A stretch of DNA of 64,000 bases from Macrostomum lignano (taxonomy: Eukaryota), in assembly GCA_002269645.1 (NCBI GenBank), contig NIVC01002433.1, forward strand, positions 62,001-126,000, written 5' to 3'. Positions within the stretch are counted from its first letter, which is position 1; the number at the start of each line of letters is the position of its first letter. Positions 14,501 to 32,500 of this stretch are shown here, one piece after another. A program made the position numbers and the translations under genes. Under the pieces are notes generated by a model. It was not told where the DNA came from, did not search any database, and saw only the letters and a list, made by a program, of their open reading frames with translations.

Positions 14501-17500
14501 TAGCACAAAATATTGGCTCACCCTGGGCAAACTTGGATGCCATAAGCAGCGACACCAGAGCTGCACCGTAGCCGTGACCCATCAGGGTGATGCTGGCGGG
14601 GTCACCACCGAACTGTGCAGCGTTGGCGTGCACCCACTGCACCGCGTCTCTCAGATCCATCAGCGCGTAGTTGCCCTTGGCTGAACCGTCTTCTGTAGCG
14701 AAGAAGCCTGTGAAAAAAACAGTGTAGATTGGGGGGACTTGAGGTGACTTAAGTGTTGTAGAATGTCTAACAGGTCTAACAGGTGTGGATATCTAACAGG
14801 GGGTGTATATCTAACAGGTGTGAATATCTAACAGGTGTGAATATCTAACAGGTGTGGATGTCTAACAGGTGTAGATATCTAACAGGTGTGGATATCTAAC
14901 AGGTATGAATATCTAACAGGTGTGAATATCTAACAGGTGTGGATGTCTAACAGGTGTAGATATCTAACAGGTGTGGATATCTAACAGGTGTGAATATCTA
15001 ACAGGTGTGAATATCTAACAGCTGTGGATGTCTAACAGGTGTAGATATCTAACAAGTGTGAATGTCTAACAAGTGTGGATATCCAACAGGTGTGGATGTC
15101 TAACAGGTGTGGATATCGTACAGGTGTGGATTTCTAACAGATGTAAATGTCTAACAGGTGTGGATGTCTAACAGGTGTGGATATCTAACAGGTGTTAATT
15201 TCTAACAGATGTAAATGTCTAACATGTGTGGATGTCTAACAGGTGTGGATGTCTAACAGGTGTGGATGTCTAACAGCTGTAAATGTCTAACAGGTGTGGA
15301 TGTCTAACAGCTGTAAATGTCTAACAGGTGTAGATGTCTAACAGCTGTAAATGTCTAACAGGTACGGACGTCTAGCATATGCGGCTAACACGTGTGGGTG
15401 TAGAACGTGAGGATCTCTAACAGGTGTGAATGGCATGAGTAGAATAAGTGCTTTATGTCTAACATAATTTTACCCAGTGTTCCAATTCGATAATTTAGCG
15501 AAATCGCAACCAGCTGATTGTAGCTGGCAAAGACGCTCAAATCGTAGGCATTTCCGGTGCCCCATTCGTAGCTCTCGCCGTGAACAAATATCACGACTGG
15601 CAGCTTGCGCTCGGATACAGTTGGTCCGGACTCTGTGGCGGTTTATGGAGCATGTACTGAGTGTACCTTTATTTTAACTAACAAATTTAACAATGCACGG
15701 CTTGCAATGGTCTTTCAGAGTACGTTTGTACATCTCAGATCCTTCGGTGGGGTCTGCTACCCTCTCAGATCCTTCGGTGGGATCTGCTACCCTCTCAGAT
15801 CCTTCGGTGGGGTCTGCTACCCTCTCAGATCCTTCGGTGGGATCTGCTACCCTCTCAGATCCTTCGGGGGATCTGCTACCCTCTCAGATCCTTCGGTGAG
15901 ATCTGCTACCCTCTCAGATCCTTCGGTGGGGTCTGCTACCCTCTCAGATCCTTCGGTGGGGTCTGCTACCCTCTCAGATCCTTCGGTGGGATCTGCTACC
16001 GTCTCAGATTATTCGGTGGGGTCTGCTACCCTCTCGGATCCTTCGGTGGGATCTGCTACCCTCAGACCTCTTTTCGCTTTATTCCTTTTGCGTCGGCTGA
16101 GCAATCGGGCGGACAAAGGAAGCAAAATTGCCAATTTTTCGTTTTCAAAGCAGACATCAAAAGTCGAATTGTTCAAATTAGAAACGGAATTCAATATTCG
16201 ATGCGGTCTGGCCTCACTCCTGCATTAGATTCTATTAGATGATATTTCTCTTTAGGCAAAATTGACTTAGGCTCGTACATAAGCATAGTATAGTAAGTTA
16301 TTGAACATAATTTTAGCGATGTCAATAGACCTCTGCCATCTTGTCAGTTGAATTGTCGCAGGGTCTGTATTGAAACTTGCATTGACAGCATTTTTACTGC
16401 GAGAGATTTAGACCCATATTTCGTCGGACAGCTACTTAGTATTTGAACTTCAAATCTGGCTGACCTCAAAATGACGGGAATCATAACTATCATAACTATT
16501 GATATTTTAGGCCTGTAAAATAATAGATTCCCTATCTTCAGAGGCTTAGAAATGTCGGTATCCAATTGTGAGCAGCTATAAGATTGTTAGTGCCAATCGA
16601 AATGCCAATCGTGTATTCTGCGGAAAGAACTTCAAAAGGCAATAAGATAATTAGGTACAGAGAAAGGTAAAAAAGGATGATAATTTTTCTAGTCACTCGT
16701 CATCAGAGATTTGGTTGCCAGGGGGTGTGCTGAGGCGGGGTTAGGGCAAGCCGCACTGCCTGAGCCTGTAATTAAATCGATAATTGGCTTGGACTGAACA
16801 ATTAGCAAGAATTCGATGCCTTCATAATGCCGAATGCAGTTAGTTATAATAGCTGAGCATCTAGTCGAAATTGATATACCGGTAATCAAAATCTAAAAAT
16901 TTCTAAAGCATGTTTTGACCACGAGACGCTCAGGTTCGTTTAAATGAAAAACACATTGGAAAATGAAAATCCCAAAATAGGATTGAGTTTTTTTTGCAAA
17001 AATTGTGTGCATTTTAAAACTTTTTATAATTTTTTATACACAAGAGTACAACAAAGACATTCGAAATTTATATTTATTTTTATCGTGTTCGACAATACAA
17101 AGCGACAGACAAAATGACATCGCGACAGCTTTCGTGACAAACAGAAATTTTTCTGTTCGAGCAAATTTAAAACTTGATAATGAAGGTATAAAAATATCCG
17201 AAAATACGGTTCGATTCAAGGTCTTGAAGCATGCATCCCCTGAACTCTAATTCAACTTTTACTTTCGAATTCTTCATCTCGTTAAGTCGCTGAGCTCAAC
17301 AAAGGAAAGGCCTTCCACTGTGTCTTTCTATAATTGCTTTGAAAACATTCCAAGGTGCAAAAACCGACGTCTACAAAGAGAGCTTAACACGAAATCATAA
17401 TATTTTTTTCGATTTGAAATACATTAGCAAGATTGAAAAAAAGCAGAAAAAGTGCGTTTCTCTACAAAAAGATTTTTCTGTAGATCTTATTTCGTCAAAA

Positions 17501-29500: not shown

Positions 29501-32500
29501 CCACACCCACACACACAGTGAGTTGCACTCCAAGATCTCCCCGAGGTCCCTATTCCAATCCAACCAATTTGTTTATGCGCGTGTGCCACGCAGATGAACA
29601 TGGCGAGTTTGGCAAGCGCACCAAAGCTTTAGTTCAGAGTGTAGAATCTTTGCGCTCAAATAGCACAAAGTGATTTTCGGTCTGCAAAGACTCAAATGGG
29701 TACCGGTAAAGTTGACTAATTCTGTCGTACTTTTACTATCTCTATCTAGTCCAGGCATCGGCAAAGAAAAGATGAGACGAGAGGAGAGGAGAGAAAAGGA
29801 GAGACGAGACAAGAGGCTTTGTATGTGGCCCACGGGTCGGAGTTTGCCGACCCCTGATCTAGTCTCCGCTCACATTTATGTAGTTCATCCAGAATTAGCA
29901 GCACCCCCCCCCCCAGCAGAATAGCTAATACAGTTTGATGTATCAAACGCTTTAACTATTTTATATACCGCTTATGTTTGCTATTCATTCCGTCGGTCAC
30001 TTAATTATCCTTTGTAGTGAACAGGATTGGACAAATCAAAGCAAGAGGCTATTTATTATAACAAAACTAGTATAAGAGCTATAAGGGTACATTTCCGCCT
30101 GCAATATTTGCCGCCAAATAGTGATTAGAATATAAAAAAGTACAGTATGGGTTCATAAATGAATAGTGGCCACTTAACTAATTGCTAAAGAGAAACTTTA
30201 CAATAAAGGCAAACAGCTTAAACACAGGCATATAGGTACAATGGATTGGGGAAAAGTGAAATGCTACTGTACATAGGGAAGCACAACAGAGGCGCTGGTA
30301 ACGCCATTGTCTATTTCCTTTAACACACGCACAAAACACCTTTAGAGGAAAACTTTTCAGAAGAAAGTTGTTGCAGAAAACGTTACAAAAGAAAGTTGTA
30401 AAAGTCTCTTCCAAACATTTTTATGACGGAAGCTATTTGTCCCAGCACTAGGATTTTCTGCAAAAAATCAATTCCTCAGCTTTTATAAAGACAGCTACAC
30501 AGCCTTAAGAATGAATAAAACACGGTTGATTCACCTACTCAAGCATCATCACTGTAGAGTACAAGCGCTAGGTGTAAAAAAATCTTAGGTATCTAAGCTT
30601 GTATAGCAATAAAACAAACATATATGACATATTTTTACAGTAAACTTTTTAGACCTTTTCCAGAGGGGAGGATGGCAACCCCGGGTGGAACAGATACGCA
30701 CAGCCGGTGGAAGAGAGGAGCTCCAATAGCAGCGGCGGGGGGGCGACATTGCGACTCAAAAAGCACGCCATAGAACAGGCCGGGAGCGGCGGATGGCGTG
30801 GGCCAAAAAATTGATTAATAAGAATGGATAGAGACCAGAAACGATTTGCAGTAGCCTCAGAGATAGAAAGACAGAAACACACAACCAAGCGAGTCTCTTC
30901 TTTACTCAATGCTCAGTTGCCAACAGAAGCTTCACTGCCTAACCCTCTTTTTCTCCTATTAGACTGACCATTACTATTTCCTATCCGGATCTGTGTACTC
31001 TGTACAGTCAACCAACTCAATCAAAAGTATATATCAACAGTAAAAACAGCTGGAAGAACTGTATCACCCATACCGATATACAAATATGCTCTGTAGAAGC
31101 AAACGTGTCCTAGACTACAACCAAAAGGATAAAAAGTATAATCTTCATTTTCATTAAAAAATCTAACTATTCATAATAAATAATTTATAAAACCTTATCT
31201 GCTAAGTAAGTGTCTAAAATTGAAGGTAGAAAGAAAAGCGAAAATGTAAAGTGCAAATTACATTTTGATTATACTGAAAGTGAAGCTGAAATATATCAGT
31301 ATAGTGGATTGTTGTGCAAAGTTAGAGAACGGACATTCAGACATTCAACGTTGAAAGTCAATATAATATCGTTAAATGCAGCCAAAGTTAATGAGTGAGA
31401 CACGGTGCATTTGACTCTATAAAATTAAATAATTGGTATATAGTATGTATAATGTAACCCTCAATTGATGTGAAAAAGTCAAATGAACTTAATTTGACGG
31501 ATGTCTCTGTTATTTCCTGCAATATAGATAAATAAAACCTTAAATAAATACGCTTTGGTAGACTATGGCCGACAGTTATGGCTTGTCAGACTTGTAGTAT
31601 TGATATTAATCAACTTCTTTAAAATATACGCTCATAAATTGTAACTTGTAAGTTTGTATGTCTGATTCTAGATCAGCTTGTTTCTTAGTCAGATAAATCT
31701 GCGCGTTATCTCAAGCAGTATATTTTTTATATTGGGCTTTCAAATTTAGGACATCCCCAGAATTTAAGACATCCCCAAGAGAGAACATTATACGATATTA
31801 CAGTCACTGAAAGAAAAACAGCTTTAGAAAAGTTTATCCCAGCGGAAATATTTAAGAGAATAATCCGATTGAATGTCTCCTGCTTTAGAGTTATCGCAAG
31901 CAGCCAGACACTTTTTAAACGCCACTGTGATCGATAGTGTTAATATTAAAACCATATTATAAAGTCAATTTTTTAAACTGACGAAGCGAAACGGTCATAA
32001 AATTGTTTACCGTACTATTTTGCTGGACTATTTCCCGGGCTATTATAAACAGCTTCAGAATCAGTTATTATATTTAGTATAGTGGACTAGCAATCATCGC
32101 CCTTATTGGGAAGGCAACAAAAATGGAATAAATTTTTCTATAAACTACATGGTGCTTTTGGCCTTGTACGAGCGTACACTCACTGTCATAAAACTCCTAA
32201 TTGACCCTTGGCATCTGAGCAGCCCTCATTAGTCTTGACATTTCAGCGATTACCTTATGAGCTACAGCCTTTCAGAACCCCCCATCCCCCCTGGGAGTTT
32301 TGGCATCTAAATGGTTATTGACAAATTTAATTATCGCATCTGCAATCGATTACAGTACACGTGCCCGGATAGACAAACTCACTTGCACTACCAGCACCCG
32401 AAGCACCACCTGTTGCAGTATCCGATTCAGCCGGCCTGTAGACATTCAAGTACAGACACTCTTCATCTTGATGCCGCAGATACGGGAGAATCCGTTGCAC

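Follow-up and report, generated by a model that had tools for sequence, protein, structure and literature searches.

The sequence analysed is a 64-kb window of contig NIVC01002433.1 from the Macrostomum lignano assembly GCA_002269645.1, to which all coordinates given here refer. Its minus strand carries a gene that we identify as neuroligin, and the first intron of this gene (15633-32382, 16,750 nt, phase 1) is best read as hosting two complete genes on the same strand: KGD4, also called MRPS36 (alpha-ketoglutarate dehydrogenase subunit 4; 21474-21782), and PPME1 (PP2A methylesterase-1; 18063-19481), both of which have a coding sequence (CDS) contained in a single exon. Along the host strand KGD4 comes first and PPME1 follows about 2 kb further on. 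Given the exon 1-exon 2 model set out below, the two guest CDSs and their candidate 3′ signals all fall inside 32382-15633.

The identity of the guests, which the preliminary description had called complete single-exon genes in the orientation of the host, was confirmed by comparison with known proteins. The KGD4 product (102 aa) matches Pfam family PF10937 with 35.8 bits (cutoff 22) over profile positions 35-116 of 116; no match was found among solved structures. GenBank lists it among the hypothetical proteins of M. lignano, and the genome has three copies of it. PPME1 (472 aa), annotated as BOX15_Mlig026503, aligns with the human PME-1 structures end to end through the last residue (E 3e-82), with the Ser-Asp-His catalytic motifs (GHSMGG, IDVVEG and GHAVHED) kept, and is about 40% identical to many animal PPME1 proteins, including a mollusc one, over 94-100% of the length. 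A search of the M. lignano proteins revealed no second PPME1 lineage. From sequence, the nested PPME1 copies appear to be the only PPME1 genes of this organism, and since there is a single lineage, the nested genes can be regarded as the working copies and not as spare retrocopies.

Outside the species, nesting was compared with the trematode Paragonimus kellicotti, as no closer relative of Macrostomum was present in the collections used. Its PPME1 consists of at least seven exons across 49 kb, and the uninterrupted CDS of M. lignano PPME1 is therefore derived. No COesterase or Kgd4 gene was called within 10 kb of the P. kellicotti gene. The intron-less state of M. lignano PPME1 would result from old retroposition or from intron loss, two origins that are indistinguishable in this sequence. 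Retrogene hallmarks, such as a poly(A) remnant or flanking duplications, were not found around the guests, and neither 3′ end has an A-run nearby.

The host model depends on the junction between its first two exons. Exon 1 (32383-32986, minus strand, 604 nt) opens with the ATG at 32986, which follows an in-frame TAA, and ends at the donor GCAA/GTGAGT; it encodes a signal-peptide-like N-terminus and the start of the esterase fold (Pfam COesterase positions 23-97). Exon 2 (15474-15632, minus strand, 159 nt), which is bounded by the acceptor ccacag/ and the donor CTGG/gtaaaa, encodes ...NYRIGTLG. The exon 1 end at 32383 and the exon 2 start at 15632, originally described as phase-compatible, both hold: the intron is in phase 1, the A of exon 1 and the AG of exon 2 form an AAG codon (Lys), and the frame stays open. 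The alignment to NLGN1 is continuous over the junction, which falls in a length-variable surface loop. Exon 2 begins in the middle of the fold, and some 130 residues of the esterase domain must come from upstream of it; in the window, exon 1 alone supplies them. A different first exon could have been located between 19.5 and 15.6 kb, as the preliminary description had pointed out; tblastn with exon 1 and with the N-terminus of a homologue identified none, either in this region or elsewhere in the window. Finally, introns 1 and 2 of M. lignano have phase-1 counterparts at exactly the same places in a neuroligin-like gene of the bryozoan Bugula neritina, where they follow ...YLNIYIPAR and ...NYRLGPLG, respectively. 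This indicates that the position of intron 1 is evolutionarily old. Because the splice sites and phase fit, the alignment is unbroken, no other first exon was found, the bryozoan intron corresponds and paralogous contigs (see below) agree, the 16.75-kb interval is best read as one neuroligin intron, in line with the preliminary description. It is unusually long for a species whose genes have on average 4.9 introns with a mean length of 1.1-1.4 kb.

In B. neritina, the last 30 nt of the exon ending in ...YLNIYIPAR (FYLNIYIPAR) also recur in the intron directly behind it, as a tandem array of roughly twelve 38-bp units (4917-5399 of the bryozoan sequence), a minisatellite grown out of the exon end.

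A different view of the junction would be that the first two exons are not spliced together at all, exon 1 being a relic or belonging to another transcript, so that neuroligin starts elsewhere or is truncated and the guests are intergenic. In this respect it is relevant that the protein databases contain no protein bridging exons 1 and 2, and that the best database models begin at exon 2 or exon 3. On the other hand, a mid-fold exon 2 needs the approximately 130 residues that only exon 1 provides, the donor, acceptor and phase agree, the position and phase of the intron are common to the bryozoan gene, and contig NIVC01002003.1 has an intact exon 1 whose donor is conserved. We consider an unjoined exon 1 very unlikely.

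In full, the neuroligin model comprises seven exons on the minus strand, from 32986 to 2504, which form one open frame of 988 aa; the exon boundaries are of the CAG/.../GT(G/A)AG type that is the consensus of the species, and the phases are compatible throughout. Exon 3 (14522-14707, 186 nt) carries GHGYG at the position of the esterase GxSxG, exon 4 (8069-8915, 847 nt) is a 100% match to a UniProt fragment model (P0005), exon 5 (7241-7356) spans 116 nt, exon 6 (4639-4967, 329 nt) encodes the end of the esterase fold and a stalk, and exon 7 (2504-3229, 726 nt including the stop) encodes a transmembrane helix, a Gln-rich cytoplasmic tail and the C-terminus QTTMV. The 988-aa product matches Pfam COesterase (PF00135) with an E-value of 1.2e-90 over profile positions 23-501 of 515. 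The best 14 matches of the spliced product in the PDB are all NLGN1-4 (about 235 bits, E ~1e-68), followed by the lipases and cholinesterases, such as bile-salt lipase and AChE, at about 105-120 bits (E ~1e-34). GHGYG is aligned to GSGAG of NLGN1, so that Gly stands in place of the nucleophile Ser, as is neuroligin-like. Hydrophobic segments are found at residues 4-22, at the N-terminus, and at 805-823 (Kyte-Doolittle 2.39, single transmembrane segment), and the predicted topology consists of a signal peptide, a stalk, one transmembrane helix and a cytoplasmic tail with a PDZ-binding T-x-V end; in vertebrates, the neuroligin C-terminus is TTRV. The identification of the host as neuroligin, a non-catalytic adhesion protein resembling cholinesterases, is justified by these sequence features, and the binding of neurexin is only predicted. 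The tail also contains polyglutamine runs (e.g., Q16 and Q9) at residues ~835-935, ahead of the conserved-looking TTMV end.

The locus is present in three copies, on NIVC01002433.1 (the window), NIVC01002003.1 and NIVC01000208.1, the latter two being colinear with the window at 92-98% identity. On NIVC01002003.1 the order TRAPPC2, exon 1, KGD4, PPME1, exon 2, exon 3 is the same as in the window, and exon 1 there is intact, keeping its donor and differing at 3 of its 201 residues. The part covered by NIVC01000208.1 contains KGD4, PPME1, exon 2 and exon 3, again in the order of the window. At the amino acid level, exon 2 of the window is 98-100% identical to that of the two paralogous contigs. 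In the protein and contig collections, the window's own PPME1 and KGD4 proteins had exact matches solely on NIVC01002433.1.

These copies bear on the possibility that the nest is an assembly artefact, with the guest-bearing segment misplaced between exons 1 and 2. The genome is rich in repeats and tandem arrays flank the segment, which would favour such an error. Nevertheless, colinearity extends over the whole nest on a second contig and over the 3′ part of it on a third, and in an older, independent assembly PPME1 likewise precedes neuroligin exon 3 in the same orientation, as can be seen from a mis-predicted UniProt model in which the two are fused (P0080). Because the layout recurs on other contigs and in the older assembly, misassembly, which the preliminary description had listed for checking, is very unlikely, and an artefact of this kind is close to refuted.

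The three copies are also highly similar within the intron. A stretch of about 6 kb just upstream of KGD4 (22500-28500) is 97.4-100% identical among them, which equals or exceeds the identity of the PPME1 coding sequence, and in general the unique intron sequence is as similar between copies as the coding sequence is. No coding-like ORF (open reading frame) was found in this conserved part of the intron (22.3-29 kb). The stretch could represent the promoter or outron of the guests, enhancers of the host, or merely the baseline similarity of repeat-free sequence.

The processing of the guest transcripts has to be considered against the background of spliced-leader (SL) trans-splicing. The M. 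lignano leader (CGGTCTCTTACTGCGAAGACTCAATTTATTGCATG) has a length of 35 nt and ends in ATG (...GCATG). Between 30 and 39% of the genes are trans-spliced, and 45% among the human-conserved ones; about 15% of the genes are found in operons, and about 7% of the transcriptional units are polycistronic precursors. The trans-splice acceptor preference has been reported as [T/C]TNCAG, and the intergenic spacing in operons as having a mode of ~100 bp, with a repeat-adjusted threshold of 1 kb (PMC8629364).

At 22 nt upstream of the KGD4 ATG, the window has TTTCTG (21805-21810, minus strand), and at the same site NIVC01000208.1 has TTTCAG. The annotated KGD4 CDS of the latter contig is marked as partial and starts one base past this TTTCAG, as expected if the annotated mRNA begins at a mapped trans-splice site. 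At 53 nt upstream of the PPME1 ATG, TTTATG is found in the window (19533-19538, minus strand) and TTTCAG, a candidate SL acceptor, on both paralogous contigs. No [T/C]TNCAG is present in the window copy within 400 nt upstream of either KGD4 or PPME1. The final 13 bases of the leader are matched in the window about as often as expected by chance (29 observed vs 28.8 expected).

The replacement of the paralogues' TTTCAG by TTTATG was also observed at 40268-40270 (minus strand), 38 nt before the ATG of TRAPPC2. In an alignment of 36.7 kb, this site and the one upstream of PPME1 (19533-19535) are the only places where CAG and ATG are exchanged; there is no such exchange on the other strand and none at any cis acceptor. 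Since ATG forms the end of the leader and RNA sequencing (RNA-seq) reads were used to polish the assembly, TTTATG may have been introduced by leader-bearing reads during polishing, and would then mark real trans-splice sites. The STAR aligner normally soft-clips leader overhangs; this, the change of only two bases and the lack of any longer match to the leader count against such an origin.

Candidate polyadenylation signals are found behind both guests: AATAAA at 21030-21035, 439 nt past the KGD4 stop, and ATTAAA at 17915-17920, 143 nt past the PPME1 stop, both on the minus strand. These hexamers, already reported in the preliminary description, are present as stated and identical across the three locus copies. 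From the KGD4 stop to the PPME1 ATG there are 1,992 nt, or 1,150 nt after subtraction of 842 nt of tandem arrays, and the repeat-adjusted distance from the candidate KGD4 poly(A) site to the acceptor position of PPME1 is ~930 nt. The spacing of the two guests, at ~0.9-1.15 kb, can thus be set against the published operon threshold of 1 kb. By comparison, KGD4 lies 10.6 kb downstream of the exon 1 donor, and exon 1 lies 6.8 kb downstream of TRAPPC2. Between the KGD4 stop and the candidate AATAAA there is an array of 12 tandem copies of a 24-bp unit (21035-21328, minus strand); each unit includes TTTACAG, which fits the acceptor motif [T/C]TNCAG, and the number of units varies among the three loci.

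On these grounds we favour, as probable though well short of certain, an ordinary host/nested arrangement in which the guests are transcribed independently inside neuroligin intron 1. The pair would be transcribed from a start region of its own within the intron, upstream of KGD4, independently of a host that is presumably restricted to neurons. PPME1, and KGD4 in at least one copy, would probably receive the spliced leader at the TTTCAG acceptor, and the two genes may form a loose bicistronic operon starting inside the intron. That the pair would be a small unit of its own is suggested by the TTTCAG sites of the paralogues, the 45% of conserved genes that are trans-spliced and the spacer of ~1 kb. 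When the host is transcribed in neurons, the polymerase would have to traverse the 3′-end signals of both guests, after which the whole interval would be spliced out as intron 1. The intron-less CDSs of the guests would offer the host few competing splice sites, and for this reason nesting on the same strand may be tolerated.

The preliminary description had suggested another way of expressing the guests, namely their release from the neuroligin pre-mRNA. The intron would then harbor an operon, with SL trans-splicing, cleavage and polyadenylation liberating KGD4 and PPME1 from the primary transcript of neuroligin; a single promoter would feed host and guests, and each cleavage at a guest 3′ end would cost one host mRNA. 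Host and guests do share one strand, M. lignano resolves its polycistronic precursors in this manner, and the paralogues have TTTCAG acceptors upstream of the guests, with one annotated KGD4 5′ end located exactly there. However, the window copy lacks these acceptor motifs, and the distance of 10.6 kb from the donor to KGD4 is far beyond operon spacing. Moreover, according to Conrad 1993, as summarised in a paper citing that work, a trans-splicing acceptor requires that no cis donor is present upstream; the exon 1 donor is located upstream in cis, and the guest acceptors would be expected to be cis-spliced. Housekeeping guests under the control of a synaptic promoter would, in addition, presumably be mis-expressed. 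Release of the guests from the host transcript is therefore improbable, the motif search in the window copy and the cis-donor rule both being contrary to it. We attach a similarly low probability to the idea that cis-splicing of the host competes with trans-splicing and polyadenylation of the guests, with the balance setting the yield of neuroligin versus guest products per cell. If this were true, the loss of TTTCAG in the window copy would shift the balance between the duplicated loci.

A broader read-through could also be envisaged, in which TRNT1, TRAPPC2, (exon 1), KGD4 and PPME1 constitute one transcription domain whose guests are resolved by trans-splicing, with exon 1 being merely traversed. 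All recognisable genes of the window are indeed on the minus strand, and in an older gene model TRNT1 and TRAPPC2 are fused at a TTTCAG acceptor. The gaps of 6.8 kb and 10.6 kb are, however, well above operon spacing, the fused models are not transcripts but were predicted on an earlier, error-prone assembly, and the objection concerning the cis donor holds here as well, so that we judge such a domain to be unlikely.

Independent transcription of the guests inside the intron thus remains our preferred reading, and several observations weigh against parts of it. Neuroligin is uncalled in GenBank on all three contigs; PAA61717, PAA61718 and PAA61719 (TRAPPC2, KGD4 and PPME1) are in direct succession. 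In UniProt, neuroligin exists only as fragment models from the older assembly, of which P0001 begins at exon 2 and P0005 at exon 3. In the protein and contig collections, the three guest and neighbour proteins matched contigs of the annotated genome exclusively, and none of the matches was to a run-assembly contig. As the window copy is without the TTTCAG of its paralogues, trans-splicing of this copy is uncertain. The divergence of ~1-4% among the three copies reflects recent shared ancestry and not long-term conservation, and the 11-13 substitutions in PPME1 between copies (pN/pS 0.36-0.83) are too few for a test of selection. Finally, the terms "housekeeping" for the guests and "neuron-restricted" for the host imply expression patterns that are assumed from orthologues elsewhere. 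The identifiers Mlig026503, Mlig019118, Mlig032594 and Mlig002882 were not mentioned in the papers and supplements searched.

Along the minus strand, the gene order of the window is protein kinase (~55628-58219), a TRNT1-like CCA-adding tRNA nucleotidyltransferase with at least two exons (~45499-47317), the single-exon gene TRAPPC2, or sedlin (39817-40230), and neuroligin with its guests. An ORF of 149 aa on the same strand (62629-63078) is without a Pfam match, and no RNA genes were found in Rfam and tRNA scans of the window. Besides the PPME1-neuroligin exon 3 fusion mentioned above, UniProt contains a fused mis-prediction of TRNT1 with TRAPPC2 (P0327). Minisatellite arrays with periods of 4 to ~99 bp occupy a large part of the introns and intergenic regions (among others at 3290-4620, 5040-7150, 14774-15374, 15733-16063, 19705-20252 and 37419-38877). 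They give rise to long spurious ORFs in both orientations, and most of the variation in length among the three locus copies is due to them.

Nested genes have been surveyed in flies and mammals. In Drosophila, about 10% of the genes are nested and 71% of these are antisense to their host (Lee and Chang 2013, PMC3814207), which supports the earlier statement that nested genes more often lie antisense; in mouse and human, where more than one tenth of the genes belong to host/nested pairs, the antisense bias is only slight (Genome Res 2024, PMC11694760). Far from being an exception, single-exon, same-strand guests in a long 5′ intron of a neuronal host are the published pattern. Among the Drosophila nested genes, 72.5% of those on the same strand have a single exon, compared to 37% of the antisense ones, a difference explained by selection against mis-splicing; the hosts are biased to brain expression, and the nested genes tend to be young, fast-evolving and testis-biased (PMC3814207). 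The M. lignano locus is like the same-strand nests of Drosophila in having single-exon guests wholly within one intron of a host of brain-expressed type, but it differs in that its guests are two ancient housekeeping genes in tandem, and in that SL trans-splicing adds a second interaction between host and guest at the level of RNA processing. Mammalian guests prefer a long 5′-most intron, often the first (PMC11694760), and although the phylum differs, the guests described here are likewise found in a long first intron.

Within the species, the guest pair resembles the SL operons described by Ustyantsev and Berezikov 2021 (PMC8629364) in that conserved genes are adjacent on the same strand, the spacer is inflated by repeats and, in the paralogues, [T/C]TNCAG precedes the downstream gene. 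The spacing, however, is at the threshold of 1 kb instead of the 100-bp mode, the window copy is without the motif and the use of the leader is a candidate feature; in addition, the operons of that publication were not described inside the intron of another gene. In the mouse H13/Mcts2 locus (PMC13309782), an intron-less guest in the same orientation as its host is reported to affect premature polyadenylation of the latter through its activity; that case differs from the present one by relying on imprinting and on DNA methylation of the guest promoter.

The locus also invites comparison with the unc-17/cha-1 locus of C. elegans, where VAChT, an intron-poor, same-strand guest, is located in the first intron of ChAT, a neuronal host. 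There, host and guest share a 5′ exon and the promoter and are linked in function. The M. lignano guests, by contrast, have no functional relation to their host, and nothing points to an exon that they have in common with it.

Taken together, an outsized first intron of a neuronal adhesion gene with single-exon guests on the same strand fits the rules derived from flies and mammals point by point, as far as the comparison of gene layouts goes; what sets the M. lignano nest apart is that trans-splicing is in use in the species and that the guests are two ancient housekeeping genes in tandem. Should the guests have their own promoter, which we consider most likely, the locus would only confirm these rules. 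For the annotation of the genome, the gain is a full-length neuroligin that has no GenBank call and is fragmented in UniProt, and whose relation, as host, to two annotated genes had not been recorded. For the biology of M. lignano, the locus provides a test case of how a host copes with same-strand guests whose acceptors could capture the donor of its first exon, in a species that is amenable to transgenesis and in which three slightly diverged copies differ exactly at the acceptor sites.

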